From the NCBI GenBank assembly GCA_002104905.1, contig MCFE01000542.1, positions 1 through 60,406 of the forward strand: DNA of 60,406 nt, written 5' to 3'. The DNA is from Basidiobolus meristosporus CBS 931.73. Its lineage: Eukaryota; Fungi; Basidiobolomycota. The notes beneath the pieces were generated by a model, which was not told the DNA's origin, searched no databases, and saw only the letters and a program-made list of their open reading frames with translations. The position numbers and the translations under genes are program-made. Every line of letters begins with the position of its first letter. The first letter of the stretch is position 1. Positions 19,237-53,924 of the stretch are shown here, piece after piece.

Positions 19237-22200
19237 TTAAGCCCAGTCACAGATGATGGAGCCCTCGAAACTCTTGCATACAGTGCCAACTGCACAGGTG
19301 TTTCTAAGTAGCTCGCCGTTCGCACAAACCGTGAAGAGTCTGGATTTACCAGAGTCAACACATTCGTAGGTGCCATTGATGCAGCTGGCTTCAGTGGGCT
19401 TGGGGGAGTGAGAGTGGGGAGTTACCGTCACTGTGGTAGTAATGGTGATAGTGTTGGGATTAGGGATGCAGGAGGGTGGTGCGATGGAGGTGGTAGGATG
19501 AGAGGTGGCGCTACCAGACTTGGATTCGTCAGTAGTGTGGGCAGTGATATGAGAATCCTTGTGAGCTTCAGTGGTTGCAGAGGCCTTGTGGGTTTCTTTG
19601 GGTACAGTTGCTTCGGAAGTCTCAGTGACCTTGTGAGACTCGGATGATTTGGTACCCGTTTGAACCACGGTAGACTTGGGGGACTCGTGAGTCTCAGAAG
19701 CCTTAGGAACGCTGATAGTCTCATGTTCCTCGTGAGATTTGACAGTCTCGGTAGTCTCAGTTGGCTTATGGGTCTCATGACTCTCGGTGGTTTCCATCGA
19801 TCTGTGGGCAACGGAGGTCTCAGTGGATTTGTTGGATTCCGAGACTGCCTTGGCCTTGCTGGAAACAGAAGTCTCAAAGGATCTGTGAGAGTCGGGAGTC
19901 TCGGTTGACTTATGGGCGGTGTGGTGTTCAGTATCCTTGTGAGACTCGGCAGTCTCAGTTGGCTTGTGAATGTTACCAGTCTCAACGGTCTTGGAGGTTT
20001 GGTGGGATTCAGAAGTCACGGTAGGTTGGTGAGATTCCACAGTGTCCACTGGTCTATGGGTGTTGCTGGTCTCTGAGGTCATGTGGGATTGGGTAGTCTC
20101 AGTGGCCTTGTGCGATGAAGTGATCGCATTTGACTTGTGAGCGCTGCTGATCTCAGAGGCTTTGTGAGCCTCGGATGTAGGGACTGATCTGCGGGACTCC
20201 AAAGTATCAGTTGATTTATGGGCATCACTAGTCTCCGAGGTCATATGAGACTCAGTGGCCTTGTGAGATCCAGAAACCACTGTTGGCTTATGAGATTCTA
20301 CGTTTGCGGTGGATTTGTGTGCTTTCGTTGAGTCGGTTGACTGGTGAACAGTCTTGGGCTCAGTATCCTTGTGAGATTCGGTGGAATGGTGCTTTCCTGT
20401 GGTCTGAGCAGTATGTTGTGATTCAGTTGCTTTAGTGGAGCCATGGGGTTTCGTAGTCACCACAGAGCTGGAGGAAGCGGAGCTATCAGTAGCTTTGCGA
20501 GACTCGGTTGCCTTGGATTTACCAGTAGAGCTATGGGAGCTAGATGTTCCGGAAACCAAGTGGGATTCGGTTGGTTTTGGTGCCTCATGGGATGTGGTGT
20601 CACTGGGAGTGTTGTGAGCAGTAGAACGTTCATCTGACTTGGAATGCTCATCTGAGGCTGATTGACTGGGAGTAGACTTGGATTCAATGATCTCAGACGT
20701 GCTAGCCGTAGACTTCAAAGCCTCACTAGAGCTATGCGAAATGGGTGTTTCAATAGCCTTGTGGGACTCGGTTGATTTGAGGGTCTTGTGGGATGCGGAG
20801 TTGTGAGTGGTGCTATGAACACTCGAAAGTTCACTTGACTCGGAATGCACACTTGGAATATTGGATTTGGGGGTCTCGCTTCCGGAATGAGATTCAGTAT
20901 GTTGATGAGTGTAGGACGTGGCGCTCCCATTGCTCGATGGGGTTGCCTGGCTCGAGTTAACCTTACTGGACATGGAAGTCTCAAGGTGCTTATGACTGTC
21001 TGAATGAGATTCAGTGTGATGCTGACTCGCCGACTCGATGCTCTTGGCAGATGAGTGAAGTGCGTAACTTGAAGTAGCCTTGCTGGACACAGAGGTCTCG
21101 ACATGCTTCTGGCTCTTTGATTCACTGCTCTTAATCGGTGTAGAGCTTTCATGACCAGTCTTCGACTCGGACTTTGCTGTCGCAATTGTGCTAGACTCGG
21201 ATTTCGAAGTGTCACTAGAACTATGCGACACGGTTGACACGGCTGACACGGTAGCCTTATGGGTCTCTGTTGCCTTTGTGCTCTCATTGGTTGTGGAGTC
21301 GTGAGTGGGGCTGTGTGTAGTCAAGCTACTAGTAGCGTGGCTTGAGGATGGCTTGCTGGATTTCTCGATGGTACTATGTGACACGGATGTGATGGTTGCC
21401 TTGTGAGACTCAGTAGATTTGGTTGTCTCGTGGGATGCGGAGCTGTTCGCGACGCTGCGAGCACTCGAATGATCAGTTGATTCTGAATGAGCACTTGATG
21501 CAGTGGACTTGGGTGCTTCAGTACTAGAATGGCTTTCTGTTGGCTTGACTACCTTCTTGTGCTCGTTGTACCACTTACAGATCTCGGCTTGCTGTCCTTC
21601 TGCCTCCATCATGGCAAAGAATCCACAGTCGTTGCTTACAATACACTCCAAGTTGTCTTTGAGGAACTGACCATGGCCAGGATTGCTATCATCACAGAGA
21701 CATGAGAACGAGTCAACAAAGTTGGGGCTGTGAATGTCCTGAGTGTACTTGGACCAGCACTTCTTGCCCGCCTTGAGCGAGCAGTCAGTAATGCACTTGT
21801 TGGGAGGTGGGAAGGGGAAGTAGTTGGATGGTCTGGGAATCCAGGTAGGCTGAGCATCAGTGGTTGTTGGGGCTTCTGAAGTCTCGGAGCTCGCTGAGGA
21901 GCCATGCGCTGCAGAGGTGGTTGTGGTGCTGTGAGATACGGGGGCCTTGCTCTCTGAGTGAGACTCGGTGTGATGCTGACTCGCCGCCTCGATGCTCTTG
22001 GCAGATGAATGAGGTGCGTAACTTGAAGTAGCCTTGCTGGACACGGAGGTCTCGACATGCTTCTGGCTCTTTGATTCACTGCTCTTAGTCGGTGTAGAGC
22101 TTTCATGACCAGTCTTCGACTCGGACTTTGCTGTCGCAATTGTGCCAGACTCGGATTTCGAAGTCTCACTAGAACTATGCGACACGGTAGCCTTATGGGT

Positions 22201-23559
22201 CTCTGTTGCCTTTGTGCTCTCATTGGTTGTGGAGTCGTGAGTGGGGCTGTGAGTAGTCAAGCTACTAGTAGCGTGGCTTGCGGATGGCTTGCTGGATTCA
22301 GAAGTCTCAACATGCTTCTGGCTCTCTGAATCACCACTCTTAACTGGTGTGGAGGTTACTTGGCTAGAGGCAGACTTGGACTTGAGGGTTTCAGTGGTGC
22401 TTGGTTCGGACTTCGATTTCTCGATGGTACTATGTGATACGGATGTGTTGGTGGCCTTGTGAGACTCAGTGGATTTGGTTGTCTCGTGAGACGCGGAGCT
22501 GTTCGCGACACTGCGAGCACTCGAATGATCAGTTGGTTCTGAATGAGCACTTAATGCACTGGACTTGTGTGCTTCAGTACTAGAATGGCTTTCTGTTGGC
22601 TTGACTACCTTCTTGTGCTCGTTGTACCACTTACAGATCTCGGCTTCCTGTCCTTCTGCCTCCATCATGGCAAAGAATCCACAGTCGTTGCTAATAATAC
22701 ACTCCAAGTTGTCTTTGAGGAACTGACCATGGCCAGGATTGCTATCATCACAGAGACATGAGAACGAGTCAACAAAGTTGGGGCTGTGGATGTCCTGAGT
22801 GTACTTGGACCAGCACTTCTTGCCCGCCTTGAGCGAGCAGTCAGTAATGCACTTGTTGGGAGATGGGAAGGGGAAGTAGTTGGATGGTCTGGGAATCCAG
22901 GTAGGCTGAGCATCAGTGGTTGTTGGGGCCTCTGAAGTCTCATTGCCCCCCGAGGAGTGATGGGATGTCGGAGTGGTAGCACTTCTATGGGGTACAGAGG
23001 TCTCACCCACTGAGCGAGATTCCGAGTGATGAGGACTCTTTGGCTGGGAACTCTCAATGGATGAGAGGGTTGCATGACTGGAGGTAACATTGCTCGGCTC
23101 GGAGGCCACTGAACTACTGTGTGTCGATGAATCGATCGATTTGGTACTAGCTGTAGGTTGAGAGATTTGACTTGTAGTGCTTCGTACTGACACTATAGTT
23201 GAGGACAACGTATGTGGTTTTACCGTGGGCCTGTGCTCTTGGTACCAATCACATACAGTGCTGTTATTGCTTTGGTAGTCGGACCAATCAATCCAATGCC
23301 AAAAGCAATTGTTGGAATAACAGTTTGACACTTCATTGGTGTACTCGGTAGTTTTGTAGCTACTGCCGCATTGGCAGGACAAGGATTCGATAAAGTGTGG
23401 ATTGCTTGGATCAAGCGTGTAATCAGGCAGACACTTCTGACCGGCTTGCATAAAACACTGTTCAAGACAACTGCCGAAGTTCATGTTGGGAGGGTTGGCG
23501 GATGCTGAAACGACAGCAGCCATTGTAAGGCCAGTGACGGCCTTGGTAGTAATATGCAT
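19237..23559 (-). CDS. Gene A: secreted mucin-like protein with 3 Cys-rich (CFEM-like) domains and C-terminal CBM19-like module, 1440 aa
   Basis: Intronless ORF with hydrophobic signal peptide, 8-Cys domains, S/T/H/E/K-rich linkers and C-terminus SCINGTYECVDSG..FTVCANG..CAVGTVC..IICDWA. TATAAATA at 23615-23622. Confidence 0.88.
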   Translation of the reverse strand: MHITTKAVTGLTMAAVVSASANPPNMNFGSCLEQCFMQAGQKCLPDYTLDPSNPHFIESLSCQCGSSYKTTEYTNEVSNCYSNNCFWHWIDWSDYQSNNSTVCDWYQEHRPTVKPHTLSSTIVSVRSTTSQISQPTASTKSIDSSTHSSSVASEPSNVTSSHATLSSIESSQPKSPHHSESRSVGETSVPHRSATTPTSHHSSGGNETSEAPTTTDAQPTWIPRPSNYFPFPSPNKCITDCSLKAGKKCWSKYTQDIHSPNFVDSFSCLCDDSNPGHGQFLKDNLECIISNDCGFFAMMEAEGQEAEICKWYNEHKKVVKPTESHSSTEAHKSSALSAHSEPTDHSSARSVANSSASHETTKSTESHKATNTSVSHSTIEKSKSEPSTTETLKSKSASSQVTSTPVKSGDSESQKHVETSESSKPSASHATSSLTTHSPTHDSTTNESTKATETHKATVSHSSSETSKSESGTIATAKSESKTGHESSTPTKSSESKSQKHVETSVSSKATSSYAPHSSAKSIEAASQHHTESHSESKAPVSHSTTTTSAAHGSSASSETSEAPTTTDAQPTWIPRPSNYFPFPPPNKCITDCSLKAGKKCWSKYTQDIHSPNFVDSFSCLCDDSNPGHGQFLKDNLECIVSNDCGFFAMMEAEGQQAEICKWYNEHKKVVKPTESHSSTEAPKSTASSAHSESTDHSSARSVANSSASHETTKSTESHKATITSVSHSTIEKSSKPSSSHATSSLTTHSPTHDSTTNESTKATETHKATVSAVSTVSHSSSDTSKSESSTIATAKSESKTGHESSTPIKSSESKSQKHVETSVSSKATSSYALHSSAKSIESASQHHTESHSDSHKHLETSMSSKVNSSQATPSSNGSATSYTHQHTESHSGSETPKSNIPSVHSESSELSSVHSTTHNSASHKTLKSTESHKAIETPISHSSSEALKSTASTSEIIESKSTPSQSASDEHSKSDERSTAHNTPSDTTSHEAPKPTESHLVSGTSSSHSSTGKSKATESRKATDSSASSSSVVTTKPHGSTKATESQHTAQTTGKHHSTESHKDTEPKTVHQSTDSTKAHKSTANVESHKPTVVSGSHKATESHMTSETSDAHKSTDTLESRRSVPTSEAHKASEISSAHKSNAITSSHKATETTQSHMTSETSNTHRPVDTVESHQPTVTSESHQTSKTVETGNIHKPTETAESHKDTEHHTAHKSTETPDSHRSFETSVSSKAKAVSESNKSTETSVAHRSMETTESHETHKPTETTETVKSHEEHETISVPKASETHESPKSTVVQTGTKSSESHKVTETSEATVPKETHKASATTEAHKDSHITAHTTDESKSGSATSHPTTSIAPPSCIPNPNTITITTTVTVTPHSHSPKPTEASCINGTYECVDSGKSRLFTVCANGELLRNTCAVGTVCKSFEGSIICDWA

Positions 23560-24417: not shown

Positions 24418-24675
24418 AACGACTAGCTGTGTTCAAAGCACAGATGGCAAGTTTCCAAACGAAACCTGGGACTGTTAAAAAAGCAGTTGGCTCGAGTGAT
24501 CTCCGCATGGTAAATGTTGTTCCATTCATTTTAACTTCGTACTAAGTTAGTATTGTATATTCACTGGAAATCAAACCATATAATATCAATTACTCTGCAA
24601 TCCCGTTTATTTCTATAACAATTCTATTTCCAAGAACATGGATTGTTCGTGAATTCGGGGTTGTATAGCAGTGGC
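24418..24675 (+). pseudogene. Duplicated fragment of the ValRS last exon plus downstream intergenic DNA
   Basis: Aligns with 18971-19236 (AACGACTAGC..GTTCAAAG..AGTTTCCAAACGAA..CCTGGGACT); carries a 1-nt insertion. Confidence 0.8.
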
Positions 24676-27600
24676 TTAAGCCCAGTCGCAAATGATGGAG
24701 CCTTGGAAGTTCATGCATACAGTACCAGCTGCGCAGGTATTTCTAATTTGCTTACCGTTCGCACAAACTGTGAAGACTGGGGAATATCCAGAATCAACAC
24801 ATTCGTATGTGCCATTGATGCAACTGGCTTCAGTGGGCTTGGGGGATTGAGAATGGGAGGCGAGTGTCTCCACTGGAGTTACCGTCACTGTAGTGGTGAT
24901 GGTGACAGTGTTGGGATTAGGGATGCAGGAGGGTGGTGCGATGAAGGTGGTAGGATGAGAGGTGGCGCTACCAGACTTGGATTCGTCAGTAGTGTGGGCA
25001 GTGATATGAGAATCCTTGTGAGCTTCAGTGGTTGCAGAGGCCTTGTGGGTTTCTTTGGGTACAGTTGCTTCGGAAGTCTCAGTGACCTTGTGAGACTCGG
25101 ATGATTTGGTACCCGTTTGAACCACGGTAGACTTAGGGGACTCGTGAGTCTCAGTAGCCTTGGGAACGCTGATAGTCTCATGTTCCTCGTGAGATTTGAC
25201 AGTCTCGGTAGTCTCAGTTGGCCTATGGGTCTCATGACTCTCGGTGGTTTCCATCGATCTGTGGGCAACGGAGGTCTCAGTGGATTTGTTGGATTCCGAG
25301 ACTGCCTTGGCCTTGCTGGAAACAGAAGTCTCAAAGGATCTGTGAGAATCGGGGGTCTCGGTTGACTTGTGGGCGGTGTGGTGTTCAGTATCCTTGTGAG
25401 ACTCGGCAGTCTCAGTTGGCTTGTGAATGTTACCAGTCTCAACAGTCTTGGGGGTTTGGCGGGGTTCAGAAGTCACGGTAGGTTGGTGAGATTCCACAGT
25501 GTCCACTGGTCTATGGGTGTTGCTGGTCTCTGAGGTCATGTGGGATTCGGTAGTCTCAGTGGCCTTGTGCGATGAAGTGATCGCATTTGACTTGTGAGCG
25601 CTGCTGATCTCAGAGGCTTTGTGAGCCTCGGATGTAGGGACTGATCTGCGGGACTCCAAAGTATCAGTTGATTTATGGGCATCACTAGTTTCTGAGGTCA
25701 TATGAGACTCAGTGGCCTTGTGAGATCCAGAAACCACTGTTGGCTTATGAGATTCTACGTTTGCGGTGGATTTGTGTGCTTTCGTAGAGTCGGTTGACTG
25801 GTGAACAGTCTTGGGCTCAGTATCCTTGTGAGATTCGGTTGCCTCTGTTGGTTTGACATGGCTGCTGCTCTCCAGGCTCTTGGAGGATTCAGCAGTCATG
25901 TTGGGCTTGTGAGACTCTGGTGCAACAGTTTGTTGATGGGACTTGATGGTCTCAGTTGGCTCGAGAGTGTCGCTGGCCTTGACGGTGGTGGCCTTGGGAG
26001 ATTCGGTGGAATGGTACTTTCCTGTGGTCTGAGCAGTATGTTGTGATTCAGTTGCTTTAGTGGAGCCATGGGGTTTCGTAGTCACCACGGAGCTGGAGGA
26101 AGCGGAGCTATCAGTAGGTTTATGGGTCTCAGTTGATTCTGATTTAATAGATGTTTGGGAAACCAAATGGGATTCGGTTGATTTGGCTGTCTCATGGGAT
26201 GTGGAGACATGTGCGATGCTGTGAACAGTCGAGTGTTCAGCTGACTTGGAATGCTCGCCTGAGATGGATTGACTAGCAGTAGACTTAGATTCAATGGTCT
26301 CAGTTGTGCTAACCGCAGGCCTCAAAGCCCCACTAGAGCTATGTGAAATGGGTGTTTCAATAGCCTCGTGGGACTCGGTTGATTTGAGAGACTCATGAGA
26401 TGCGGAGTGTGTGGTGGCACTATGAATAGATGAACGTCCAGTGGGCACTGAATGAACATTTGGAACACTGGACTTGCGGTTCTCGTTTTCGGAATGAGAT
26501 TCAGTATGTTGCTGAGTATTAAACTTGGTGCTCTTGTTGCTTGATGTGGTTGCCTGACTCGAGATAACCTTACTGGTCATGGAGGTCACAACATGCTTAT
26601 AACTCTTTGATGCACTACTCTTCATGGTTCTGATGGTGGTTTGACTAGCAACAGACCTGGACTCTGTGGCCTTATGGGACTCGGTTACTTTGGTTGTCTC
26701 ATGAGATGCAGAGTCGTGAGTGACATTGCCAACAGTCGAATGTTCAGTCGACTTTGGATGCACGCTTGAGGCACTAGACTTGGGTTTTTCAGTACTAGAA
26801 TGGCTTTCGGTTGGCTTGACTACCTTCTTGTGCTCATTGTACCACTTGCAGATCTCGGCTTCCTGTCCTTCTGCCTCCATCATGGCAAAGAACCCACAGT
26901 CGTTGCTTACAATACACTCCAAATTGTCTTTGAGGAACTGACCATGGCCAGGATTGCTATCATCACAGAGACATGAGAACGAGTCAACAAAGTTGGGGCT
27001 GTGGATGTCCTGAGTGTACTTGGACCAGCACTTCTTGCCCGCCTTGAGCGAGCAGTCAGTTATGCACTTGTTGGGAGATGGGAAGGGGAAGTAGTTGGAT
27101 GGTCTGGGAATCCAGGTAGGCTGAGCATCAGTGGTTGTTGGGGCTTCTGAAGTCTCGGAGCTCACTGAGGAGCCATGCGCTGCAGAGGTGGTTGTGGTGC
27201 TGTGAGATACGGGGCCTTGCTCTCTGAGCGAGATTCGGTGTGATGCTGACTCGCCGACTCGGTGCTCTTGGCAGATGAATGAGGTGCGTAACTTGAAGTA
27301 GCCTTGCTGGACACGGAAGTCTCAACATGCTTCTGGCTCTTTGATTCACTGCTCTTAATCGGTGTATAGCTTTCATGACCAGTCTTCGACTCGGACTTTG
27401 CAGTCGCAATTGTGCTAGACTCGGATTTCGAAGTCTCACTAGAACTATGCGACACGGTTGACACGGCTGACACGGTAGCCTTATGGGTCTCTGTTGCCTT
27501 TGTGTTCTCATTGGTTGTGGAGTCGTGAGTGGGGCTGTGAGTAGTCAAGCTACTAGTAGCGTGGCGTGCGGATGGCTTGCTGGATTCAGAAGACTCAACA

Positions 27601-30600
27601 TGCTTCTGGCTCTCTGAATCACCACTCTTAACTGGTGCGGAGGTTACTTGGCTAGACGCAGACTTGGACTTGGGGGTCTCAGTGGTGCTTGGTTCGGACT
27701 TCGATTTCTCGGTGGTACTATGTGACACGGATGTGTTGGTGGCCTTGTGAGACTCAGTGGATTTGGTTGTCTCGTGAGATACGGAGCTGTTCGCGACGCT
27801 GCGAGCACTCGAATGATCAGTTGATTCTGAATGAGCACTTGATGCAGTGGACTTGTGTGCTTCAGTACTAGAATGGCTTTCTGTTGGCTTGACTACCTTC
27901 TTGTGCTCGTTGTACCACTTGCAGATCTCGGCTTCCTGTCCTTCTGCCTCCATCATGGCAAAGAATCCACAGTCGTTGCTAATAATACACTCCAAATTGT
28001 CTTTGAGGAACTGACCATGGCCAGGATTGCTATCATCACAGAGACATGAGAACGAGTCAACAAAGTTGGGGCTGTGGATGTCCTGAGTGTACTTGGACCA
28101 GCACTTCTTGCCCGCCTTGAGCGAGCAGTCAGTAATGCACTTGTTGGGAGATGGGAAGGGGAAGTAGTTGGATGGTCTGGGAATCCAGGTAGGCTGAGCA
28201 TCAGTGGTTGTTGGGGCTTCTGAAGTCTCGGAGCTCACTGAGGAGCCATGCGCTGCAGAGGTGGTTGTGGTGCTGTGAGATACGGCGGCCTTGCTCTCTG
28301 AGCGAGATTCGGTGTGATGCTGACTCGCCGACTCAGTGCTCTCGGTAGATGAGTGAGGTGCGTAACTTGAAGTAGCCTTGCTGGACACGGAGGTCTCAAC
28401 ATGCTTCTGGCTCTTTGATTCACTGCTCTTAATCGGTGTATAGCTTTCATGACCAGTCTTCGACTCGGACTTTGCAGTCGCAATTGTGCTAGACTCGGAT
28501 TTCGAAGTCTCGTTAGAACTATGCGACACGGTTGGCACGGTTGACACGGTAGCCTTATGGGTCTCTGTTGCCTTTGTGTTCTCATTGGTTGTGGAGTCGT
28601 GAGTGGAGCTGTGAGTAGTCAAGCTGCCAGTAGCGTGGCTTGCGGATGGCTTGCTGGATTCAGAAGACTCAACATGCTTCTGGCTCTTTGAATCACCACT
28701 CTTAACTGGTGTGGAGGTTACTTGGCTAGACGCAGACTTGGACTTGAGGGTTTCAGTGGTGCTTGGTTCGGACTTCGATTTCTCGATGGTACTATGTGAC
28801 ACAGATGTGTTGGTGGCCTTGTGAGACTCTGTGGATTTGGTTGTCTCGTGAGACGCGGAGCTGTTCGCGACACTGCGAGCACTCGAATGATGAGTTGATT
28901 CTGAATGAGCACTTGATGCACTAGATTTGCGTGCTTCAGTACTAGAATGGCTTTCGGTTGGCTTGACTACCTTCTTGTGCTCGTTGTACCACTTACAGAT
29001 CTCGGCTTCCTGTCCTTCTGCCTTCATCATGGCAAAGAATCCACAGTCGTTGCTAATAATACACTCCAAGTTGTCTTTGAGGAACTGACCATGGCCAGGA
29101 TTGCTATCATCACAGAGACATGAGAACGAGTCAACAAAGTTGGGGCTGTGGATGTCCTGAGTGTACTTGGACCAGCACTTCTTGCCCGCCTTTAGCGAGC
29201 AGTCTGTAATGCACTTGTTGGGAGATGGGAAGGGGAAGTAGTTGGATGGTCTGGGAATCCAGGTAGGCTGAGCATCAGTGGTTGTTGGGGTTTCTGAAGT
29301 CTGGGAGCTCACTGAGGAGCCATGCGCTGCAGAGGTGGTTGTGGTGCTGTGAGATACGGCGGCCTTGCTCTCTGAGTGAGACTCGGTGTGATGCTGACTC
29401 GCCGACTCGGTGCTCTCGGTAGATGAATGAGGTGCGTAACTTGAAGTAGCCTTGCTGGACACGGAGGTCTCAACATGCTTCTGGCTCTTTGATTCACTGC
29501 TCTTAATCGGTGTAGAGCTTTCATGATCAGTCTTCGACTCGGACATTGCAGTCGCAATTGTGCTAGACTCGGATTTCGAAGTCTCACTAGAACTATGCGA
29601 CACGGTTGACACGGCTGACACGGTAGCCTTATGGGTCTCTGTTGCCTTTGTGTTCTCATTGGTTGTGGAGTCGTGAGTGGGGCTGTGAGTAGTCAAGCTA
29701 CTAGTAGCGTGGCTTGCGGATGACTTGCTGGATTCAGAAGTCTCAACATGCTTCTGGCTCTCTGAATCACCACTCTTAACTGGTGTGGAGGTTACTTGGC
29801 TAGATGCAGACTTGGGCTTGAGGGTCTCAGTGGTACTTGGTTCGGACTTCGATTTCTCGATGGTACTATGTGACACGGATGTGTTGGTGGCCTTGTGAGA
29901 CTCAGTGGATTTGGTTGTCTCGTGAGACGCGGAGCTGTTCGCGACACTGCGAGCACTCGAATGATCAGTTGATTCTGAATGAGCACTTGATGCAGTGGAC
30001 TTGTGTGCTTCAGTACTAGAATGGCTTTCGGTTGGCTTGACTACCTTCTTGTGCTCATTGTACCACTTGCAGATCTCGGCTTCCTGTCCTTCTGCCTCCA
30101 TCATGGCAAAGAACCCACAGTCGTTGCTTACAATACACTCCAAGTTGTCTTTGAGGAACTGGCCATGGCCAGGATTGCTATCATCACAGAGACATGAGAA
30201 CGAGTCAACAAAGTTGGGGCTGTGGATGTCCTGAGTGTACTTGGACCAGCACTTCTTGCCCGCCTTGAGCGAGCAGTCAGTAATGCACTTGTTGGGAGAT
30301 GGGAAGGGGAAGTAGTTGGATGGTCTGGGAATCCAGGTAGGCTGAGAATCAGTGGTTGTTGGGGCTTCTGAAGTCTCGGAGCTCACTGAGGAGCCATGCG
30401 CTGCAGAGGTGGTTGTGGTGCTGTGAGACTCGGTGTGATGCTCACTCGTCGACTCGATGCTCTTGGTTAATGAATGAGGTGCGTAACTTGAAGTAGCCTT
30501 GCTGGACACGGAGGTCTCAACATGCTTCTGGCTCTTTGAGTCACTGCTCTCAATAGGCTTAGAGGGCATTTGGCTACCCATAGACGCGGGTTTCAAAGTC

Positions 30601-31295
30601 GTACTAGAGCTATCTGATATAGTAATGTGGTGAGTTTGTGTTGATTTGATTGTCTCGTTAGCTGTGGAGTCATGGGCATCACTGTGTTTAGTTGAGCTTT
30701 CAGTTGCAGGAATCGAAGTAGTCGTACTGATAGATTCGGCTTTTGAAGCTACCATAGAACTTTGTGCTCTTAGTGATGAAGTACCATCTTCGGACTTCAC
30801 ACTTTTAACTGTACTAGTAGAGTCGATTGATGACTCGGAGGCTGCTGAACTACTGTGGGTCGATGAATCGATCGATTTGCTACTAGCTGTAGGCTGAGAG
30901 ATCCGACTTGTAGTGCTTCGTACAGACTCGATAGTTGAGGACAACGTATGTGGTTTTACCGTGGGCTTGTGCTCTTGGTACCAATCACATACAGTGCTGT
31001 TATTGCTTTGGTAGTCGGACCAATCAATCCAATGCCAATAGCAATTGTTGGAATAACAGTTTGACACTTGATTGGTGTACTCGGTAGTTTTGTAGCTACT
31101 GCCGCATTGGCAGGACAAGGATTCGATAAAGTGCGGATTGCTTGGATCAAGCGTGTAATCAGGCAGACACTTCTGACCGGCTTGCATAAAACACTGTTCC
31201 AGACAACTGCCGAAGTTCATGTTGGGAGGGTTGGCGGATGCTGAAACGACAGCAGCCATTGTAAGACCAGTGACGGCCTTGGTAGTAATATGCAT
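24676..31295 (-). CDS. Gene B: paralog of A with 5 Cys-rich domains; ~2206 aa if the 1-nt deletion at 27211-27214 is restored
   Basis: Same signal peptide and C-terminus as A. ORFs 27162-31343 and 24676-27165 join if GGGG is read as GGGGG, as in the homologous repeat unit at ~21960. TATAAATA at 31349-31356. Confidence 0.85.
26810..30400 (-). repeat. 1074-bp (358-aa) intragenic tandem repeat in gene B
   Basis: Marker TTGTTGGG recurs at 27068, 28141, 29215 and 30289 (spacings 1073, 1074, 1074); array edges are approximate. Confidence 0.92.
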
Positions 31296-33270: not shown

Positions 33271-34830
33271 TTAAGCCCAGTCACAGATGATGGAGCCTTG
33301 GAAGGGCTTGCACACGGTACCTGGGGCACAGGCTTGGGTGAAAACTCTACCGTTGGCGCAGACAGTGAATTTGTCGGATTTACCACCGTCAACGCACTTG
33401 TAGGTGCCGTTAACACAGGAGCCTTCAGTTGGCTTGGGGTGGGATCCAGCAGCAACGGTGACGGTCTTGGTCTTGGTCACAGTGACTGGAACACATGGCT
33501 TAGTGGGCTTGGGAGTCTCAACAGGCTTGTGGGTCTCAGTAACTTTGTGAGTCTCGGTAGTTTTGTGGGTTTCAACAGGCTTGTGAGTCTCAGTGTCCTT
33601 GTGAGCTTCGGTGGTCTTGTGAGCCTCGGTATCCTTGTGGGTTTCGGTGGTCTTGTGAGCCTCGGTATCCTTGTGGGCTTCGGTGGTCTTGTGAGCCTCA
33701 GTATCCTTGTGGGTTTCGGTGGCCTTGTGAGTCTCGGAAGCCTTGTCAGTGGCGGTGGTCTTGACAGTTTCAGTAGCCTTGGTAGTAGATTCAGACTTGA
33801 CGCTTTCGGTGGATTTATGGCTCTCGGTCTTCTCGGTAGAGGTGGTCTCCTTGGACTCGGTGGTCTTATGAGATTCAGTAGTCTTGGGGGTCTCAGTAGA
33901 TTTATGAGATTCAGTGGACTTGTGAGTCTCGGTGGACTTCTCAGTCTCAGTGGACTTGTGGGTCTCGGTGGACTTCTCGGTCTCAGTAGATTTGGGAGAC
34001 TCGGTAGACTTCTCAGTCTCAGTGGACTTGTGGGTCTCGGTGGACTTCTCGGTCTCGGTAGACTTGTGAGACTCGGTGGACTTCTCGGTCTCGGTAGACT
34101 TAGGAGACTCAGTGGACTTCTCGGTCTCAGTAGACTTGGGAGACTCGGTGGACTTCTCAGTCTCAGTGGACTTGTGGGTCTCGGTGGACTTGTGGGTCTC
34201 GGTGGACTTCTCGGTCTCGGTAGACTTGTGGGTCTCAGTGGACTTAGGAGACTCGGTGGACTTGTGGGTCTCGGTGGTTTCGGTGGACTTCTCGGTCTCG
34301 GTAGACTTGGGAGACTCAGTGGACTTCTCAGTCTCGGTAGACTTGTGGGTCTCAGTGGACTTCTCGGTCTCGGTAGACTTGTGGGTCTCAGTGGACTTCT
34401 CAGTCTCAGTGGACTTGTGGGTCTCAGTAGACTTCTCGGTCTCAGTAGGCTTATGGGTCTCGGTAGACTTCTCGGTCTCAGTGGACTTGTGGGTCTCGGT
34501 AACACTAGGTTGGGGTACCCAGGAGCTATAGACACTGCAGGTCATAGGAGCGAGTGCCTTGTAAGAAGCAACAGCGTTAGCATTACACTTGGAGTCAATG
34601 AAGCATTGGTCTCTGTCGTTAATGAAAGTCTTCTGGGCTGGATTGCTGTCATCGCAAAGGCAGCCTAGAGATTCATTATAGTTGGCACTGTTTTGATCCA
34701 TAGTGTATTTAGGAGTGCACTTGAGGCCAGCCTTCTCTACACACTTGTTGATACAGATATCAGGGTTTTCCCAAGCAGTGGCAACAGTTGCGGCAGCAAG
34801 GCCGGCAAGAACTTTGAGAGAGAAATGCAT
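33271..34830 (-). CDS. Gene C: secreted protein with one 8-Cys domain, xxKSTE hexapeptide repeats and CBM19-like C-terminus, 519 aa
   Basis: Signal peptide MHFSLKVLAGLAAATVATA; CINKCVEKAGLKC..YTMD..GCLC; ends IICDWA. Confidence 0.9.
   Translation of the reverse strand: MHFSLKVLAGLAAATVATAWENPDICINKCVEKAGLKCTPKYTMDQNSANYNESLGCLCDDSNPAQKTFINDRDQCFIDSKCNANAVASYKALAPMTCSVYSSWVPQPSVTETHKSTETEKSTETHKPTETEKSTETHKSTETEKSTETHKSTETEKSTETHKSTETEKSTESPKSTETEKSTETTETHKSTESPKSTETHKSTETEKSTETHKSTETHKSTETEKSTESPKSTETEKSTESPKSTETEKSTESHKSTETEKSTETHKSTETEKSTESPKSTETEKSTETHKSTETEKSTETHKSTESHKSTETPKTTESHKTTESKETTSTEKTESHKSTESVKSESTTKATETVKTTATDKASETHKATETHKDTEAHKTTEAHKDTEAHKTTETHKDTEAHKTTEAHKDTETHKPVETHKTTETHKVTETHKPVETPKPTKPCVPVTVTKTKTVTVAAGSHPKPTEGSCVNGTYKCVDGGKSDKFTVCANGRVFTQACAPGTVCKPFQGSIICDWA
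33910..34500 (-). repeat. 18-bp coding minisatellite (THKSTE/TEKSTE/SPKSTE)
   Basis: Units such as GAGACCCACAAGTCCACT, GAGACCGAGAAGTCTACC and GAGTCTCCCAAGTCTACC. Confidence 0.92.
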
Positions 34831-38358: not shown

Positions 38359-41300
38359 CTAAATGTTCATACTGACTAGTCCTAATTTTGACCTAAGATA
38401 TTCAAACTTGTCTCTAGCTAATGGTTTGGTAAATATGTCTGCAATCATTTCATCTGTAGGACAGTAAACTAAGCTAACTAAGTTATTCTCTATAGCTTCA
38501 CGTATGAAATGATGTCTAATATCTATGTGCTTGGTTCTAGCATGAAAAGTTGGATTTCTACCTAATTGTATACATCCTTGATTATCTTGAAATAAAGTAA
38601 TAGGCGTTTTTTGACATAGGCCTAAATCTGTAAAGAGCTTTCTTAACCACATTGCTTCTTTTGTAGCTTCACAGGCTGCCATATACTCTGCCTCTGTGGT
38701 AGAAAGTGCTACGGTTGGTTGCTTTCTTGAATTCCATGAAATTGCTCCTTGACAGTAAAGAAAGGTGTATCCTGTGGTGGATCTTCTGTCTTCTAAATTT
38801 CGTCCCCAATCTGCATCAGAGTATCCCACAAGATCTTGTTCTGAGTCCTTATAAGTGTATCTTAAGCAGATATCAGCAGTTCCTTTTAGGTATCTAAAAA
38901 TCCGCTTAACTGCTGCAATATGATCAGATCCATAATTCTGATTATGTTGGCTGACAACTCCCACTGAATATGAGATATCTGGACGTGTTCCAAGCATGAT
39001 ATACATCAGACTGCCGACCATAGATTGATAAGGAAAGTCAGGGCTTTCAGATGGCACCAAGCTCTCTTGATTTGGTTGAGTTTTGACCAAGTTAAGGTTT
39101 GTCTCCATTGGGGTGGCTGCCGGTTTACAGTCTTCCATTTTGTACTTCTTTAGTATATCTTGAATATACTTGGATTGGCTTAGGGTAATAGTCTGGGTAC
39201 TTCTGTCTATGGAGAACTTAATCCCTAAGTAGTAACTAAGTTCTCCTAGATCGGACATCTTGAACTCCTTAGATAGGCTGGATTTAGTCTCTTCCAATGT
39301 TTCTAGGTTATTGGCGGCTATAATAAGATCATCCACATATAGAGCTAATAGAACTGGATTTGCTCTATCTGGCTTATAGTATATACTATAGTCAGCATTA
39401 CTTCTTTTGAAACTCAAAGATTCCAAATAAGAATCTATCTTGCAATTCCAGGCTCTCGGTGATTGTTTGAGACCATATAGTGACTTTTTAAGCTTGCAGA
39501 CCAAATGGGGGTTATTTTGGTCAACAAACCCATCAGGCTGGTCCATATACACGTCCTCATCAAGTTCTCCATTCAAAAATGCAGTTTTTACATCCATTTG
39601 ATGAATAAAAAACTTATATTTGGCTGCAATAGCCAATATTAATCTGATGGAATTAAACTTGGCTACCGGTGCAAAGGTCTCAGTATAGTCAAGTCCTTTT
39701 GTTTGAGAGTATCCTTTGGCTACAAGTCTTGCTTTGTATCTTTCAATTGTACCATCAGCCTTGTATTTTGTCTTGAAGACCCATCTGCATCCAATTGATT
39801 TTCGGTTGGTTGGTAATTTGACTAAGTCCCAAGTTTGATTTTCCATCAGTGCCTGATATTCCTCAGTCATTGCAGATCTCCAAAACTTCGTCTGAGGGCT
39901 ATTTAGGGCCTCTTTTACAGTCTGGGGTTCATCAACATGGACTGAATAGGCATAGGCTAAGTTTGTACCCTCATTGATATAGTAATTTGGGCTATTTCTT
40001 GTCCGATTGGATCTCCGGGCATTTGATACTGGAATGATCACTTCTGGGATATTCCTGGGCACTGATTCTGGCTGAACCACGGTTGTAGAGTCCTCTGGAG
40101 TGAAAAAATTTTCATTGTTTTGCTCTGATTCAATCCTGACAATTGGTGGACTTGAGATCAAATTTTCGTCATCATCTGATGTCATTTTTTGTGAAAATTT
40201 TGAATTTTCATCAAACAACACATCCCTGGACTTGATCAGCTTCTTTGCTTCGGTATTGTAGAGTCTGTATGCCTTACTCTCATTGCAGTAGCCCAAAAAT
40301 ATGCATTTTACACTTTTTGGCTCAAATTTTGACTGATTTCCGGCCAGTTTTTTGGCATATGCTGTACACCCAAATATTCTTAGATGTTCTGCACTTGGTC
40401 TGTATCCATACCATGTTTCAAATGGAGTAGAATCACGAAGTATTCTGTTATAACTCCTATTTTTAAGATATACAGCAGTGGCAACTGATTCCGCCCAAAA
40501 ATCATAGGATAATTTTTGATCATGGATCATAGATCTTGCCATATCAATTATTGATCTGTTAGCTCGTTCTGCTACTCCATTTTGCTGTGGGGAGTATGGT
40601 ACAGTAGTCTCTTGCTTTATCCCATGAATTTTGCAGAAGTGGATGAAGAGTTTTGAGGTATATTCTCCACCATTGTCAGAGCGTATTTTCTTGATTTTTT
40701 CACCAGTTTCTCTCTCCACCATGGCTTTAAACTCCCTGAACTTAGACAGAGCTTCTTCCTTTCTCTCCATGAAGTAGACCCATGTGTATCTTGTATAATC
40801 ATCAATAAAAGTGATTAAATACTTCATCCCGCCTAAGGATAAATTTTGCATAGGTCCACACAGATCTGAGTGAATTAGATCTAATTTTTTCTTAGTTTTG
40901 ATTAACCCAGAGCTCTTGAACGGTTGTCTGGCTTGTTTCCCATATATGCAGGCTTCACAGTGCTCCAAATTAGCTGGGGGATCAATTTTCACTCCAGAAA
41001 TTAGCTGATCTTTGATCATTTTACGCAAATAATCAAAATTGATGTGTCCAAATCTCCTGTGCCAAAGCATTGGTGTTTCTTCATTTAAGTTACTTATATT
41101 GGCTTCCAGATATGATGGAATATAAGTCAACTTGTATAGATTCTGATCTCTGATGCCCGAAGCAATATGAGCACCATTTTGATCAGTGATCCTGCATCCA
41201 GAATTGTCAAAACTGAAACTGAGTCCTTCTGCTGTGGCCTTGCTTACAGAGAGTAGGTTCTTGGCTATTTCTGGTACATAGAGTACTTCTTTAAAGGTCA

Positions 41301-42329
41301 GTGTATGGCTTCCTTTGCTGCTTCTAAGGTTTACTTGGATAGTTCCTTCTCCCACTGCATCAAGTGTTCTATCGTCACCCATGAAAACCTTCTTAATTGG
41401 AATTTCTTGATATTGGGTAAAAAGTTCTTTTTGGTGTGTAAAGTGTTGAGAAGCTCCAGAGTCAATATACCACGTCTGAGAATCCTTGTTTGTGGTCATA
41501 TTTAGTGCAGATATGAATAGTCTATCTTCAGTTGTTGCAGCATTTCCATATTCAGGCTTCTTTTGCTGATAATCTCTCTTTTTGAAACACCGGTCTGATG
41601 TGTGTCCTTTCCTTTTGCAGTAGTTGCAAAATAGGTTGCTGTTGCCTTTGTAGGGTCTTGGGTACCTCCTTTGTTGGTTATCATTGCTTATTAAAGCATT
41701 TTCTTCTTCCTTCTTATTGGTGCTTGATTTTCTTAATTCTTCATCCAGGAGCCTTCCATATACGTAATTTAAGGTCAAATCTTCAGTTCTGGACTCTAGG
41801 CTGATACAAGGCCCTGAAACTCGTCTGTCAGGCTATTCAGGATGGTAACTATCACATCCTCATCAGTAGTTGGTACGCCCACAGATTCCATCTCATCTAC
41901 CAGCAGGGTAATTCTGTTAATTAGATTTTTCATTTCTTCTCCTGGCAGCATCTTTGTAGTAAAGAATTTTCTTCTCAGATACATTTTCTTGGCAGCTGAA
42001 CATGACTGGTAGGTGTCTTCTAATGCCTTCCAGGCATTCTTTGCCGTTTTTGCTCTTGAGCATTGAATTAGCAATTTGTCCTTGACATTAAGGCAAATGC
42101 AGTTAAAGGCACTTTGTTCTTTCTTCTGGTACTTTAAGGCTTCCTCTCCCACGTTTTTAGGAGGGCATTCTTCTCCCATGACAATATCCCAAAGGCCTCT
42201 TTCTTGCAGCAGCATCTTCATCTTCACCTTCCACACTTGGTAGTTAGATCCATCCAACTTTTCAGCAGAGGGAAAAATTCCAGTAATAGCAGTAGTAGAC
42301 ATTGCAGAGAGTGACAGCTCGGGGCTCAT
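38359..42329 (-). CDS. Copia Gag-Pol polyprotein (~1323 aa if the 1-nt deletion at ~41799 is restored)
   Basis: KLDGSNYQVW gag; CNYCKRKGHTSDRC; WYIDSGAS protease; HSDLCGP / RSDNGGEY / NGVAER integrase; QMDVKTAFLNG and LYVDDL RT; YSDADW RNase H, in copia order. Confidence 0.93.
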
Positions 42330-42333
42330 AACC
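42320..42333 (-). promoter_or_regulatory. Copia PBS complementary to the initiator-tRNA(Met) anticodon arm
   Basis: GGTTATGAGCCC directly after the 5' LTR pairs with GGGCTCATAACC of fungal tRNAi-Met. Confidence 0.8.
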
Positions 42334-42697
42334 TGTTGTAAGAGTCTTGGAGATATTGGAAGTGATTTGGAGAACAAGTAGATTATGTGGTTTTCACTTA
42401 ATGATTTATTGAATGTAAAAGTGGTATTTATACTTTTACCTGGTCTTGGCATTACAAACACGTAGAATAGGTTAAGGAAGGTCCCAAGAACATGTGTGCA
42501 AAGTTTGGGGCTGTTTGGACAACTTTGAGAATTTTCATGTTCTGGGTACCTGGCATTTTGGTGAAAATATTCTAAGTAAATCCCGACAAGGAATTTGGTC
42601 AGTATTCTCTAGGATTTGAGGGTAATGATCTAAGTGACTAAGTTAGGTGAATATTTAGGTGGAAATTACGAATTTTACAACAATCTGGACATGTTCC

Positions 42698-45903: not shown

Positions 45904-46248
45904 TGTTGTAAAAGTCTTGGAGATATTGGAAGTGATTTGGAAGGACAAGTAGATTATGTGGTTCTCACTTAATGATTTATTGAATGTAAAAGTAGTATTT
46001 ATACTTTTACATTGTCCTGGCATTTCTAACACAAAGAATAGGTTAAGAAAGGTCCCAAAACATGTGTGCAAAGTTTGGGGCTGTTTGGACAACTTTGAGA
46101 ATTTTCTTGTTCTGAGTACCTGGTATTTTGGTAATAATATTCCAAGTCCCAACAAGGAATTTGGTCAGTATTCTCCAGGATTTGAAGGTAATGATCTAAG
46201 TGACTAAGTTAGGTGAATATTTAGGTGGAATTATGAATTTTTACAGCA
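45904..46248 (-). mobile_element. Copia LTR
   Basis: TGTTGTAA...TTACAGCA, colinear with the family LTR. Confidence 0.88.
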
Positions 46249-46252
46249 TTTG

Positions 46253-47708: not shown

Positions 47709-49083
47709 TTAGGCCCAGTCACAGATGATGGAACCTTCGAAGGTCTTGCAGACAGTACCAGGGGCGCAGACTTGCTCAATGGCCTTACCGTTAGCGCAAA
47801 CAGTGAACTTAGCAGATTTGCCTGAATCAACGCATTGGTAGGTACCATTGGAGCAAGAGGCTTCAGTGGGCTTGGCAGAGTGACCAACAGTTACGGTCTT
47901 GGTGACAGTGAGGGTAACTGGTGCGCAAGTTTCAGCAGGCTTGTGAGCCTCAGTAGTCTTGTGGGTTTCAGTAGTGTGGTGGGTCTCGGTAGGCTTGTGA
48001 GCTTCAGTAGTCTTGTGGGTCTCAGTAGTGTGGTGAGTCTCGGTAGGCTTGTGAGTCTCGGTGGTCTTGTGGGTTTCGGTGGTCTTGTGAGCCTCAGTAG
48101 ACTTCTCGGTCTCAGTGGACTTGTGGGTCTCGGTAGACTTCTCGGTCTCGGTGGACTTGTGGGTCTCGGTAGACTTCTCGGTCTCGGTGGACTTGTGGGT
48201 CTCGGTAGACTTCTCGGTCTCGGTGGACTTGTGGGTCTCGGTAGACTTCTCGGTCTCGGTGGACTTGTGGGTCTCGGTAGACTTCTCGGTCTCAGTGGAC
48301 TTGGGAGACTCGGTGGACTTCTCGGTCTCAGTGGACTTGTGAGTCTCGGTAGACTTCTCGGTCTCAGTGGACTTGTGAGTCTCGGTGGACTTCTCGGTCT
48401 CAGTGGACTTGTGAGTCTCGGTAGACTTCTCGGTCTCAGTGGACTTGGGAGACTCGGTGGACTTCTCGGTCTCAGTGGACTTGGGAGACTCGGTAGACTT
48501 CTCGGTCTCAGTGGACTTGTGAGTCTCGGTAGACTTCTCGGTCAGTGACTTGGAGACTCGGTACTCTCGTCGTAGACTTGTGAGTCTCGGTGGACTTCTC
48601 GGTCTCAGTGGACTTGTGGGTCTCGGTGGACTTCTCGGTCTCAGTGGACTTGTGGGTCTCGGTGGACTTCTCGGTCTCGGTAGACTTGGGAGTCTCGGTA
48701 GACTTCTCGGTCTCAGTGGACTTGTGAGCCTCGGTGGACTTCTCGGTCTCAGTGGGTTTGACGCTGTTTTCTTTATACCAGGCGCAAATCTGACTTTGCA
48801 AAGTCGTCAACTCGGTGATATGTGACAATGTGTAGGGGCAATTCAATGCGCACATGGCAGTATCATCGGTGAATTTGGCTTTCGAGGGATTTTCACAGAT
48901 TAGTTCGATGGATTTCATAAAGTTAGGACTGCTTGGATCCTGAGTGTAATCCGTCATCAGTTTCTTGCCAGCGTTCAAGGCGCAGTCAGTAATGCATGGA
49001 GTAGGATATTTGAATGGGAAGTCGACAGCAGAGACAACAACTGAAGCGGCAAGAACCGCAAGGGTCTTAGAGGCAAAATGCAT
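47709..49083 (-). CDS. Gene D: secreted protein with 6-Cys domain, xxKSTE repeats and CBM19-like C-terminus; frame garbled at ~48541-48580
   Basis: Signal peptide MHFASKTLAVLAASVVVSA; FPFKYPTPCITDC..YTQDPSSPNF; 3' part reads ..SCSNGTYQCVDSGKSAKFTVCANG..CAPGTVCKTFEGSIICDWA*. Confidence 0.85.
47950..48755 (-). repeat. 18/36-bp coding minisatellite in gene D
   Basis: Alternating TEKSTE/THKSTE units, the same unit set as in gene C. Confidence 0.9.
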
Positions 49084-51132: not shown

Positions 51133-51738
51133 TTAAGCCCAGTCGCATATGATGGAATTTCTAACCGTCTTGCAGACAGTGCCAGCTGAACAGGCTTGGG
51201 TCACGAGTTTGCCATTGTTACAGATAGTGAATTGACCAGATTTTCCTGAATCGACGCATTGGTAAGCACCATTAATACAAGAAGCTTTAGCTGGTTTGGA
51301 AGTTTGCGTTTTGGTCACAGGAATGGCTACACTCGTTTTAGTTACAGTTGGAGTTTGGACGGGAGTAAACATGGTGGTGAAGGCACTGTTCATTGCATTT
51401 TGGGGCTCATCAAAATTCTCAAGCGTATTGAAAAGGTTACAAAAGGTTTCAGCCAATACCGGTAACTCAGGCATGGTAGTATTACACCTCTCAGCCAGAC
51501 AATACTTGCCTTGTTTTAGATAAACGTTTACTAGAGGAGAATCTTCGACACAAAGTAATTCGAGTGATTCCTGGACGGAAGGATTAGATTGAACCTGCTC
51601 ATATTGGTACCAGATTCTTAGACCGGCTTCCATCACACAATTCAAAACACAGTCGAGCCGTTGTTGGGTTTGAGGCTCGGAGGCAGAGACTAGGACAGAA
51701 GTGAAGAGTCCAGCAAGAATTGTGGTGGAGAAACGCAT
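51133..51738 (-). CDS. Gene E: small secreted protein, 6-Cys domain + short linker + CBM19-like module, 201 aa
   Basis: Signal peptide; CVLNCVMEAG..Y..S..LC..C..C..C; ends IICDWA. Confidence 0.88.
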   Translation of the reverse strand: MRFSTTILAGLFTSVLVSASEPQTQQRLDCVLNCVMEAGLRIWYQYEQVQSNPSVQESLELLCVEDSPLVNVYLKQGKYCLAERCNTTMPELPVLAETFCNLFNTLENFDEPQNAMNSAFTTMFTPVQTPTVTKTSVAIPVTKTQTSKPAKASCINGAYQCVDSGKSGQFTICNNGKLVTQACSAGTVCKTVRNSIICDWA

Positions 51739-53319: not shown

Positions 53320-53924
53320 TTAAGCCCAGTCACAGAGGATGGAATCCTTAACAGTCTTGCAGACAGTACCAGGTGCACAGGCTTCGGTTACGAGTTTGCC
53401 ATTATTACAAACAGTGAATTCGACAGATTTTCCGGAGTCGACGCATTGGTAGGTGCCGTCGACACAAGAGGCTTGGTAGGTTTAGGAGCTTGTGTTTCGG
53501 CAACAGGAATGACTGTACTCGCTACAGTTACAATAGGGGTTTGGACGGGAGTAAACATGGTGGTGAAGGCACTGTTCATTGCATTTTGGGGCTCCTCAAC
53601 ATTCATGAGCTCGCTGAACAAGCCACAGACGGCTTCAGGTATGGCAGGCAACTCAGCCAAGGTAATATTGCAATTTCTAGCCAAGCACACTGTGCTTTGT
53701 TTTACGAAAGTGGTTGATAGTGGAGAGTCTGGTGCACAAAACATTTCAATAGATTCTAGGATGGAAGGATTGGCTTGGCCTTGATCATACTGGAACCAGG
53801 TCCTTAAACCAGCCTCCATCGCACAACCAGCTAAGCATTCGAATCGTTGTTCGATTTGATATTCGGAGGCGGAGGCTAGGACGGTGGTAAAGAGTCCAGC
53901 AAGTACTGTGGTAGAAAAGCGCAT
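53320..53924 (-). CDS. Gene F: tandem duplicate of E; 201 aa if a 1-nt deletion at ~53470 is restored
   Basis: AAGCC vs expected AAGGCC; restoring the G gives KASCVDGTYQCVDSGK..ILCDWA* and the same length as E. Confidence 0.82.

Follow-up and report, generated by a model that had tools for sequence, protein, structure and literature searches.

A 60,406-nucleotide stretch of the Basidiobolus meristosporus CBS 931.73 genome (contig MCFE01000542.1, positions 1 to 60,406 of the forward strand; hereafter the window) carries a tandem array of six co-oriented genes, A to F, on its minus strand between positions 19237 and 53924. The encoded proteins share a single architecture, in which a signal-peptide-like N-terminus is followed by one to five copies of a Cys-rich head, a stalk rich in Ser and Thr, and a C-terminal chitin-binding module of the CBM19/CBM14 type. 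The head is very probably a divergent CFEM domain with two lengthened loops, homologous to the CFEM domains of ascomycetes and basidiomycetes. We consider it likely that the six products are secreted wall glycoproteins, whose CBM19 tail would sit on the chitin layer and whose stalk length would set the reach of the one to five CFEM-like heads.

Domain architecture of the array

The array was delimited from a listing of open reading frames (ORFs) and their translations, and two hidden Markov models (HMMs) run over the six-frame translation of the 60 kb found 12 head domains and six tails, all on the minus strand, and no others. This agrees with the first-pass annotation of the window, which had described six co-oriented genes with one to five heads apiece: gene A encodes three heads, gene B five, and genes C, D, E and F one each. 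A regular-expression scan recovered 11 of the 12 heads and all six tails; the HMMs, built from the array's own alignments, recovered all 12 heads.

At the N-termini a short basic segment precedes a hydrophobic stretch and an end of the SAS, ATA or SAV type; they are signal-peptide-like as judged by eye. The final stalks measure 50 residues in E and in F, about 306 in D, 370 in C, 672 in B and 728 in A, and consist of 20%–27% Ser, 15%–32% Thr, 7%–10% His and 8%–21% each of Lys and Glu; linkers of roughly 50 to more than 700 residues with this bias had been described. All six proteins then end in a 48-residue block with six Cys that closes with CDWA immediately before the stop codon. A hydrophobic C-terminus is found in none of the six, which have this polar tail where a glycosylphosphatidylinositol (GPI) signal might have stood, again as first described.

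Fold of the head and its link to CFEM

An AlphaFold model of the head, made from an eight-sequence alignment (predicted local distance difference test, pLDDT, 91.8; predicted template-modelling score, pTM, 0.80), is all-helical, with five helical segments. Its first seven matches among the clusters of the AlphaFold database are unnamed proteins at template-modelling (TM) scores of 0.73–0.91, which from their accessions we take to come from Basidiobolus, Syncephalastrum, Lichtheimia, Linnemannia, Mucor, Absidia and Podila. The next 23 matches include 17 that are named CFEM (TM 0.38–0.66, probability at most 0.98). Among the Swiss-Prot models, Effector CFEM1 is matched at TM 0.68 (root-mean-square deviation 2.2) and two GPI-anchored hemophores at 0.60–0.61, and a shape search of the ESM Atlas returned the head's own family at 0.85, CFEM at 0.67 and all other families at 0.49 or less. 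Across three model libraries, CFEM is thus clearly the closest named fold to that predicted for the head. Csa2 (4Y7S), to our knowledge the only CFEM with a solved structure, ranked fourth among 48,161 Protein Data Bank (PDB) chains in VIA, a Foldseek-independent scan of representatives, with a Z score of 4.5; the head model has the helical-basket fold of a CFEM domain, and the match to Csa2 itself is weak. A language-model feature search, which we treat as a lead only, gave CFEM for 22 of 100 matches (score 0.72).

The sequence link to CFEM runs through a close relative. The second head of the B. ranarum protein P0007, which is 58% identical to the internal heads of genes A and B (E 1e-36), scores 23.0–23.1 bits over positions 9–66 of the Pfam CFEM profile PF05730 (E 8e-5), above the gathering cut-off of 22 bits; the first head of the same protein scores 12.3 bits. 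CFEM membership of the array heads would therefore come by way of this relative, and not by a direct match. The label CFEM-like, given to the head in the first-pass annotation, is supported by the predicted all-helical fold and by the relative that passes the Pfam model; the array heads themselves miss that model. No CFEM protein came up at E ≤ 10 in word-indexed searches, whether run with the family profile or with the P0007 head. The family proved to be in part already annotated under a named domain, an outcome that had been set down as refuting the original proposal: UniRef automatically names three Basidiobolus paralogues (P0005, P0018 and P0095) [quoted passage not shown]. These names agree with the CFEM idea but lower its novelty.

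Cysteines and conserved residues

The eight-Cys heads of A, B and C have the spacing C-x3-C-x7-C-x18-C-x-C-x15/16-C-x4/5-C-x15-17-C, exactly as first reported for the array; the pattern fails for the heads of D, E and F, which lack Cys3 and Cys4. In an alignment of 66 head sequences from the family, 63 have G15 and 49 have A14, all 66 have an aromatic residue (Y, W or F) at position 22, position 23 is T or S in 61, and the Asp of the YTxD motif (D25) is present in 60. The conserved AG and Y-T-x-D noted in the array are therefore borne out. Loss of cysteines is always pairwise: 58 of the 66 heads lack both Cys3 and Cys4, 17 lack both Cys5 and Cys8, and Cys1, 2, 6 and 7 are present throughout, apart from one row in which Cys7 is misaligned. 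Most heads in the family have six or four Cys. A study of canonical CFEMs likewise reports members that are missing precisely the third and fourth Cys, along with one missing the first and seventh (PMC9684206). That both groups lose Cys3 and Cys4 jointly is compatible with the same disulfide map. In the heads described here, the paired losses suggest Cys3–Cys4 and Cys5–Cys8 bridges, which would leave Cys1 and Cys2 to cross-pair with Cys6 and Cys7.

When the heads are set against the CFEM consensus (C-x3-C-x8-12-C-...-C-x-C-x9-14-C-x3-4-C-x15-16-C), the order of the cysteines, the C-x3-C and C-x-C pairs and the last spacing fit. The departures are in the spacing from Cys2 to Cys3 (x7), from Cys3 to Cys4 (x18, much longer than in CFEM), from Cys5 to Cys6 (x15-16) and from Cys6 to Cys7 (x4-5). 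In hemophore-type CFEMs the haem iron is ligated by an Asp, Asp80 in Csa2. D25 lies at a roughly matching distance from the start of the domain within the range of the Csa2 superposition (model residues 1–84 against chain residues 57–124), a correspondence at the level of the range only. The conserved Asp stands 11–12 residues before the CxC in these heads, versus 2–5 in CFEM.

The chitin-binding tail

The tails are 54%–72% identical to that of gene E. Scanned alone against Pfam CBM_19 (PF03427, cut-off 20.1 bits), the tails of E (27.0 bits), F (26.7) and C (20.8) pass, as does that of the B. ranarum protein P0003 (21.7); the tails of D (18.6), B (17.1) and A (14.5) fall under the cut-off and are 61%–66% identical to that of E. 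CBM_14 is the second match for every tail scanned. In an alignment of nine tails, 18 positions are invariant, the six Cys and a Tyr among them. The AlphaFold model of the tail (pLDDT 79.8) has five strands, and its top PDB match is the CBM14 of human chitotriosidase CHIT1 (probability 0.97, TM 0.60–0.64), with further matches to Blo t 12, Avr4 with chitin hexasaccharide, Der p 23 and tachycitin. In the ESM Atlas the top match is a Zoopagomycota GH18 chitinase cluster with CBM_19, at TM 0.78. Hence the tail is a chitin-binding module of the CBM19/CBM14 type, the first-pass annotation having proposed CBM19, and on the strength of its sequence matches and model it would be expected to bind chitin.

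The wider family

A profile search over 1.84 billion representative sequences (E ≤ 0.001) matched 76 clusters, of which three were judged spurious, leaving 73 in the family. The members sampled come from Basidiobolus, from Mortierellomycotina (Linnemannia, Mortierella, Actinomortierella, Lobosporangium and Lunasporangiospora) and from Mucoromycotina (Zychaea, Umbelopsis, Cunninghamella, Gilbertella, Sporodiniella and Backusella), and these profile hits are named "hypothetical", "uncharacterized" or "secreted protein". Basidiobolus is placed in Zoopagomycota (Entomophthoromycotina), so the description of the source as an early-diverging fungus was right. The clusters dropped were P0026 and P0063, both bacterial, and P0057, a repeat protein, which gave many partial matches of 2–9 bits at profile positions 20–71; P0026 and P0063 are large bacterial-looking proteins with 8–10 weak partial matches each in the middle of the head profile.

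A simple hydropathy rule assigns a signal peptide, a head, a Ser/Thr spacer and an uncharged hydrophobic C-terminus to 33 of the 73 representatives, encoded at other loci, which gives them the classic layout of GPI-anchored CFEM proteins; nine are short head-only secreted proteins. The CBM tail was found in Basidiobolus proteins only, and is the Basidiobolus variant of the family. Since most relatives end in a GPI-like hydrophobic C-terminus, the phrase "CBM19 instead of GPI", coined from the array alone, describes the family well. One protein with a GPI-like end, P0033, comes from a record labelled as the basidiomycete Malassezia pachydermatis; the label is unconfirmed, and in the tree the protein groups with metagenome sequences. 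It may derive from a mislabelled or contaminated assembly, or may be a first member from Dikarya. Five head-only secreted paralogues of 113–124 residues (P0014, P0092, P0094, P0095 and P0096; neighbouring locus tags K493DRAFT_305331–305333, 340303 and 63792) lie on one 79,838-base contig of B. meristosporus CBS 931.73. They have neither stalk nor tail and probably form another tandem array of the same domain.

A maximum-likelihood tree of the heads is weak, because it draws on only 84 columns. All array heads fall in a 15-row group containing only Basidiobolus (one row was not looked up), which is split with support 96/85 from a mixed group of 51 rows that holds the Mucoromycota heads. Within the smaller group, array heads pair with heads from B. 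ranarum or B. meristosporus, and two of the pairings are strongly supported. Head F pairs with P0002 (100/99 for the clade of E, F and P0002), head A1 with the first head of P0005 (99/94) and head D with P0014 (91/90), and head A2 has P0003 as its nearest row, at a fork without resolution. Given these pairings, the strongly supported head subtypes, together with the layout of a distinct first head followed by internal heads, appear to predate the split of the two Basidiobolus species. The CBM-tailed P0012 sits in the other group of the tree, so the tail has been combined with more than one head subtype.

Stalk repeats and growth of the array

The stalks of C and D contain tandem units of 18, 36 and 72 nucleotides that encode TEKSTETHKS-type units, the stalk of D being built of 36-nucleotide repeats. 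Among fungal wall mucins, an abundance of His, Lys and Glu in the stalk is uncommon; it might confer metal binding. The TEKSTETHKS-type decapeptide repeats (33526–34500 and 47940–48755) are 8%–10% His. Gene C has a sub-threshold Pfam match to a Plasmodium histidine-rich protein (39 bits, cut-off 45.8).

The internal heads of gene B are spaced at 1074, 1074 and 1073 nucleotides, the last interval being one short because of the 1-nucleotide contraction described below. Two internal units of gene B that were aligned are nearly identical, and the A and B blocks are 91%–95% identical in DNA. The array has grown by recent duplication of genes in tandem and by unequal crossing-over, in which units of about 1.07 kb, each a head with its stalk, have multiplied. 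Unequal crossing-over has been proposed likewise for the multi-CFEM proteins of Dikarya (PMC4530338).

Gene inventory and frame breaks

Gene A (19237..23559; all six genes are on the minus strand) is an intact ORF of 1440 residues, with a signal peptide, heads at 23469–23242, 22851–22624 and 21795–21568, and a CBM tail at 19383–19240. Gene B (24676..31295) begins at the ATG at 31295, not at the TTG at 31343, and has heads at 31205–30978, 30287–30060, 29213–28986, 28139–27912 and 27066–26839 and a tail at 24822–24679. Gene C (33271..34830) is an intact 519-residue ORF with an eight-Cys head at 34755–34528 and a tail at 33417–33274. Six-Cys heads are found in the remaining three genes: D (47709..49083; head 48996–48775, tail 47855–47712), which has a TATAAATA box about 50 nucleotides upstream of its ATG; E (51133..51738; head 51651–51430, tail 51279–51136), an intact ORF of 201 residues; and F (53320..53924; head 53837–53616, tail 53466–53323). 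Gene E is 99% identical to K493DRAFT_312040 of B. meristosporus CBS 931.73 and 58% identical to a B. ranarum protein, and the B. ranarum orthologue of gene F, P0002, is intact.

Only A, C and E are uninterrupted in this assembly; the frame breaks in B, D and F are missing from the first-pass annotation. In gene B, a run of five C has contracted to four near 27212; gene A has five C, and the same spot in the preceding repeat unit of gene B reads GCC-GCC. Gene D has several small deletions relative to its repeat unit, clustered within a stretch of about 45 nucleotides at around 48535–48577, and gene F lacks one base after 53474. Contigs of three public sequencing runs (X1, X2 and X3) were placed on 48760–54000, and in all three an extra base stands behind 53474 at full depth and restores the frame of gene F through its tail. 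At least 12 small indels, with 11 more counted besides, separate the assembly from the run contigs in these 5.2 kb. The contig either represents another strain or haplotype or carries indel errors, and by analogy the breaks of genes B and D may likewise be an artefact of assembly or strain. Over the same interval the contigs of X1 and X2 differ from the assembly by many full-depth substitutions, and at many other sites the depth is about 40%, much as two haplotypes or paralogous copies would give.

Coverage in run X3 is confined to the gene bodies of D, E and F, with near-zero depth between them, so that X3, which is catalogued as DNA by guess, behaves like cDNA. Word depth is about 26,000 on the D head, about 160–190 in the region of the E head and 300–1000 on F, which suggests that all three genes are expressed and that the D transcript is very abundant. 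One X3 contig, at a depth of about 6300, joins the D coding start at 49086 to 47615–47720; its portion from 47615 to 47644 matches the D 3' untranslated region exactly, so that in the orientation of the gene this region stands directly before that of the ATG. The junction could be a head-to-tail copy of D absent from the assembly, a chimeric cDNA contig from a very abundant transcript or a back-splice.

A Ty1/copia retrotransposon with gag and pol ORFs (38359..42461, minus strand) is inserted between genes C and D, where there is also a truncated second copy (44935–46155, in the orientation of the array) with the same leader peptide region. A Ty3-type element (6845–11164) lies on one flank, and an apparently intronless, intact 1015-residue gene for glycine dehydrogenase, the P-protein of the glycine cleavage system (56156–59203, minus strand), also flanks the array. 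Leu/Gly/Ser-rich ORFs on the plus strand (33208–34668 and 47835–48548) were rejected as genes, being antisense images of the stalk repeats.

A model of the proteins and its alternatives

In the model we favor, the signal peptide would direct each protein into the secretory pathway. Each head would be a divergent CFEM-superfamily domain in which four to five helices pack into a compact basket, pinned by three or four disulfides. The Ser/Thr-rich stalk, with its unusual wealth of His, Lys and Glu, probably carries O-linked mannose and is probably extended. In place of the GPI-type signal that most relatives have at the C-terminus, the CBM19/CBM14 tail would attach the protein, by non-covalent binding, to chitin in the wall of the fungus itself, and the stalk, at 50 to more than 700 residues, would set how far outward the heads are carried. 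The polarity of GPI-anchored CFEM wall proteins, with a C-terminal anchor and an N-terminal head, would thereby be kept.

Several results weigh against this reading. Chitin binding, wall localisation and glycosylation are all predictions. No array head matches Pfam CFEM (PF05730 / IPR008427) at E ≤ 1, and three of the 66 family heads match it weakly at E ≤ 10, no better than Defensin_big or Fer4_10 are matched, so that this 66-head scan alone shows nothing. Profiles of eight and of 66 head sequences found nothing among PDB sequences at E ≤ 10. A Foldseek search of the head against the PDB returned noise only and did not retrieve Csa2, and the Z score of 4.5 for Csa2 is within the stated noise range of VIA for helical folds. 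Between the conserved Asp and the CxC, the heads have about 8–10 residues more than the CFEM consensus, marked by a DPxSPxFxxSL motif; this insertion presumably adjoins the region that forms the haem platform in Csa2, and the ligand surface may therefore differ. Three of the genes are frame-broken in the assembly and the reads contradict the break of F only, no run labelled RNA could be found, and the reading of X3 as cDNA comes solely from its coverage pattern.

The proteins might instead be released to coat chitin to which they are not covalently joined, either protecting the hyphae that made them from chitinases of the gut or host, in the manner of Avr4, or acting as a glue to foreign chitin in insect cuticle or arthropod remains, with stalk and heads forming a protective or adhesive layer. 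The tail fold, with its matches to Avr4 bound to chitin hexasaccharide and to peritrophin-type domains, would suit such a role, as would the lack of a covalent wall-linking signal or a GPI-like C-terminus in these proteins and the biology of Basidiobolus as a herptile gut symbiont dispersed by insects (PMC9391592). Avr4-type shields, however, are small, single-domain proteins, whereas stalks of 300–700 residues with as many as five heads are characteristic of wall proteins on display, and relatives with the same head and GPI-like ends point to a role at the cell surface. The data at hand do not separate binding of own from binding of foreign chitin, and overall we think release rather unlikely. 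We regard as quite improbable a different origin of the head, as an independent helical, disulfide-rich zygomycete domain that has converged on the CFEM bundle. Such convergence would account for the failure of the array heads against Pfam CFEM and of the profiles against PDB sequences, for the modest structural scores (Z 4.5 for Csa2, TM 0.4–0.68 to CFEM models) and for the two middle loops that exceed the CFEM consensus, and small helical bundles often match by chance. It sits poorly with CFEM being by far the dominant named match in three independent model libraries and in the language-model feature search (22/100), and with a close family member that passes Pfam's curated cut-off. The eight Cys in CFEM order, the same joint loss of Cys3 and Cys4, the same place after the signal peptide, and the same Ser/Thr stalk and GPI-like end in the family all speak against it as well.

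A further possibility is that the array is partly decaying, with B, D and F as pseudogenes left over from recent duplications and transposon insertion, and the graded set an accident of duplication rather than a functional series. The frame breaks speak for this, as do the copia element and copia fragment that split the array and the very recent duplication of A and B. The break in F is nevertheless absent from all three public runs, the many small indels in 5.2 kb suggest an artefact of assembly or strain, the D head region is the deepest in the cDNA-like run, and the architecture is retained in the B. ranarum orthologues of F and of the A/B type. This makes decay very unlikely in our view. 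A more ambitious version of the wall-protein model, which we hold to be unlikely as a whole, would have the CFEM superfamily predate Dikarya and descend from an ancestral GPI-anchored wall protein, common to Zoopagomycota, Mucoromycota and Dikarya, that Basidiobolus rebuilt as a chitin-anchored, height-graded ligand relay. E and F would then be the short-stalk members, C and D the medium ones, and A and B the long, multi-head ones, and captured haem, iron or another metal, or lipid would be passed inward through the wall, by analogy with Csa2, Rbt5 and Pga7 in Candida, with a possible contribution to metal binding from the His-rich stalks. A haem relay is an attractive idea, as the three height classes recall Csa2, Rbt5 and Pga7 and the Asp is kept in 60/66 heads. 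Ligand binding, wall localisation and a relay graded by stalk height are nonetheless conjecture.

Significance

Reviews up to 2026 restrict CFEM to Ascomycota and Basidiomycota, place its origin in their common ancestor and report it absent from zygomycetes (PMC4530338, PMC13586796), and a secretome survey of 132 zygomycete genomes leaves it unmentioned (PMC9391592). Our literature search on CFEM in early-diverging fungi turned up no paper that describes the domain there. Because UniRef flags a few Basidiobolus proteins as CFEM, the bare statement that CFEM-like proteins occur in Basidiobolus is not new. What appears to be new is how large and widespread the reduced-cysteine family is in Mucoromycota, the GPI-like build of its members, and the combination of CFEM-like head and CBM19 tail with graded stalks.

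The family would put CFEM-type domains outside Dikarya, against the restriction stated in those reviews. If the homology is true, the origin of CFEM moves back before the split between zygomycetes and Dikarya, and a set of unannotated wall proteins gains a name, including proteins of Mucorales, the order responsible for mucormycosis. To free secretion, GPI anchoring and seven-helix membrane receptors, the CBM19 tail would add a fourth means of positioning a CFEM head, and the array would offer a simple and testable picture of how heads are displayed at set distances by a fungus whose wall is rich in chitin.

Comparison with known systems

The nearest characterized counterparts are the GPI-anchored CFEM proteins of Dikarya, such as Rbt5, Pga7 and Csa2 of Candida albicans, CfmA-C of Aspergillus fumigatus and Ccw14 of Saccharomyces cerevisiae. 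Like these, the array proteins have a signal peptide, an N-terminal eight-Cys helical domain, a Ser/Thr-rich stalk and an anchor at the C-terminus; in both groups unequal crossing-over produces the multi-domain copies and Cys3 is lost together with Cys4, and the models agree at TM 0.6–0.68. They differ in that the array heads have longer Cys3–Cys4 and Cys5–Cys6 loops and miss Pfam CFEM, CBM19 takes the place of GPI as the anchor, His, Lys and Glu abound in the stalk, and the lineage is Zoopagomycota, from which CFEM is reported to be absent (PMC4530338, PMC13586796).

Closer still is the unnamed secreted family of four-, six- and eight-Cys helical proteins in Mucoromycota and Basidiobolus (for instance A0A077WI00, S2JQ59, P0006, P0024 and P0061), of which the array heads are members: the domain is the same, with profile E values down to 1e-76 and TM scores of 0.73–0.91. 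Most proteins of that family, however, have six or four Cys, one head and a GPI-like end, whereas the array genes add a CBM19 tail and up to five heads, with eight Cys in A, B and C. The tail has its own parallels in the CBM19/CBM14 modules at the C-terminus of Zoopagomycota GH18 chitinases, in the CBM14 of human chitotriosidase, in Avr4 of Cladosporium fulvum and in tachycitin, with which it shares six Cys, five strands, a length of about 48 residues and conserved aromatics. Unlike those modules, which belong to chitinases or stand alone as effectors, the array tail is joined to a CFEM-like head and a mucin stalk.

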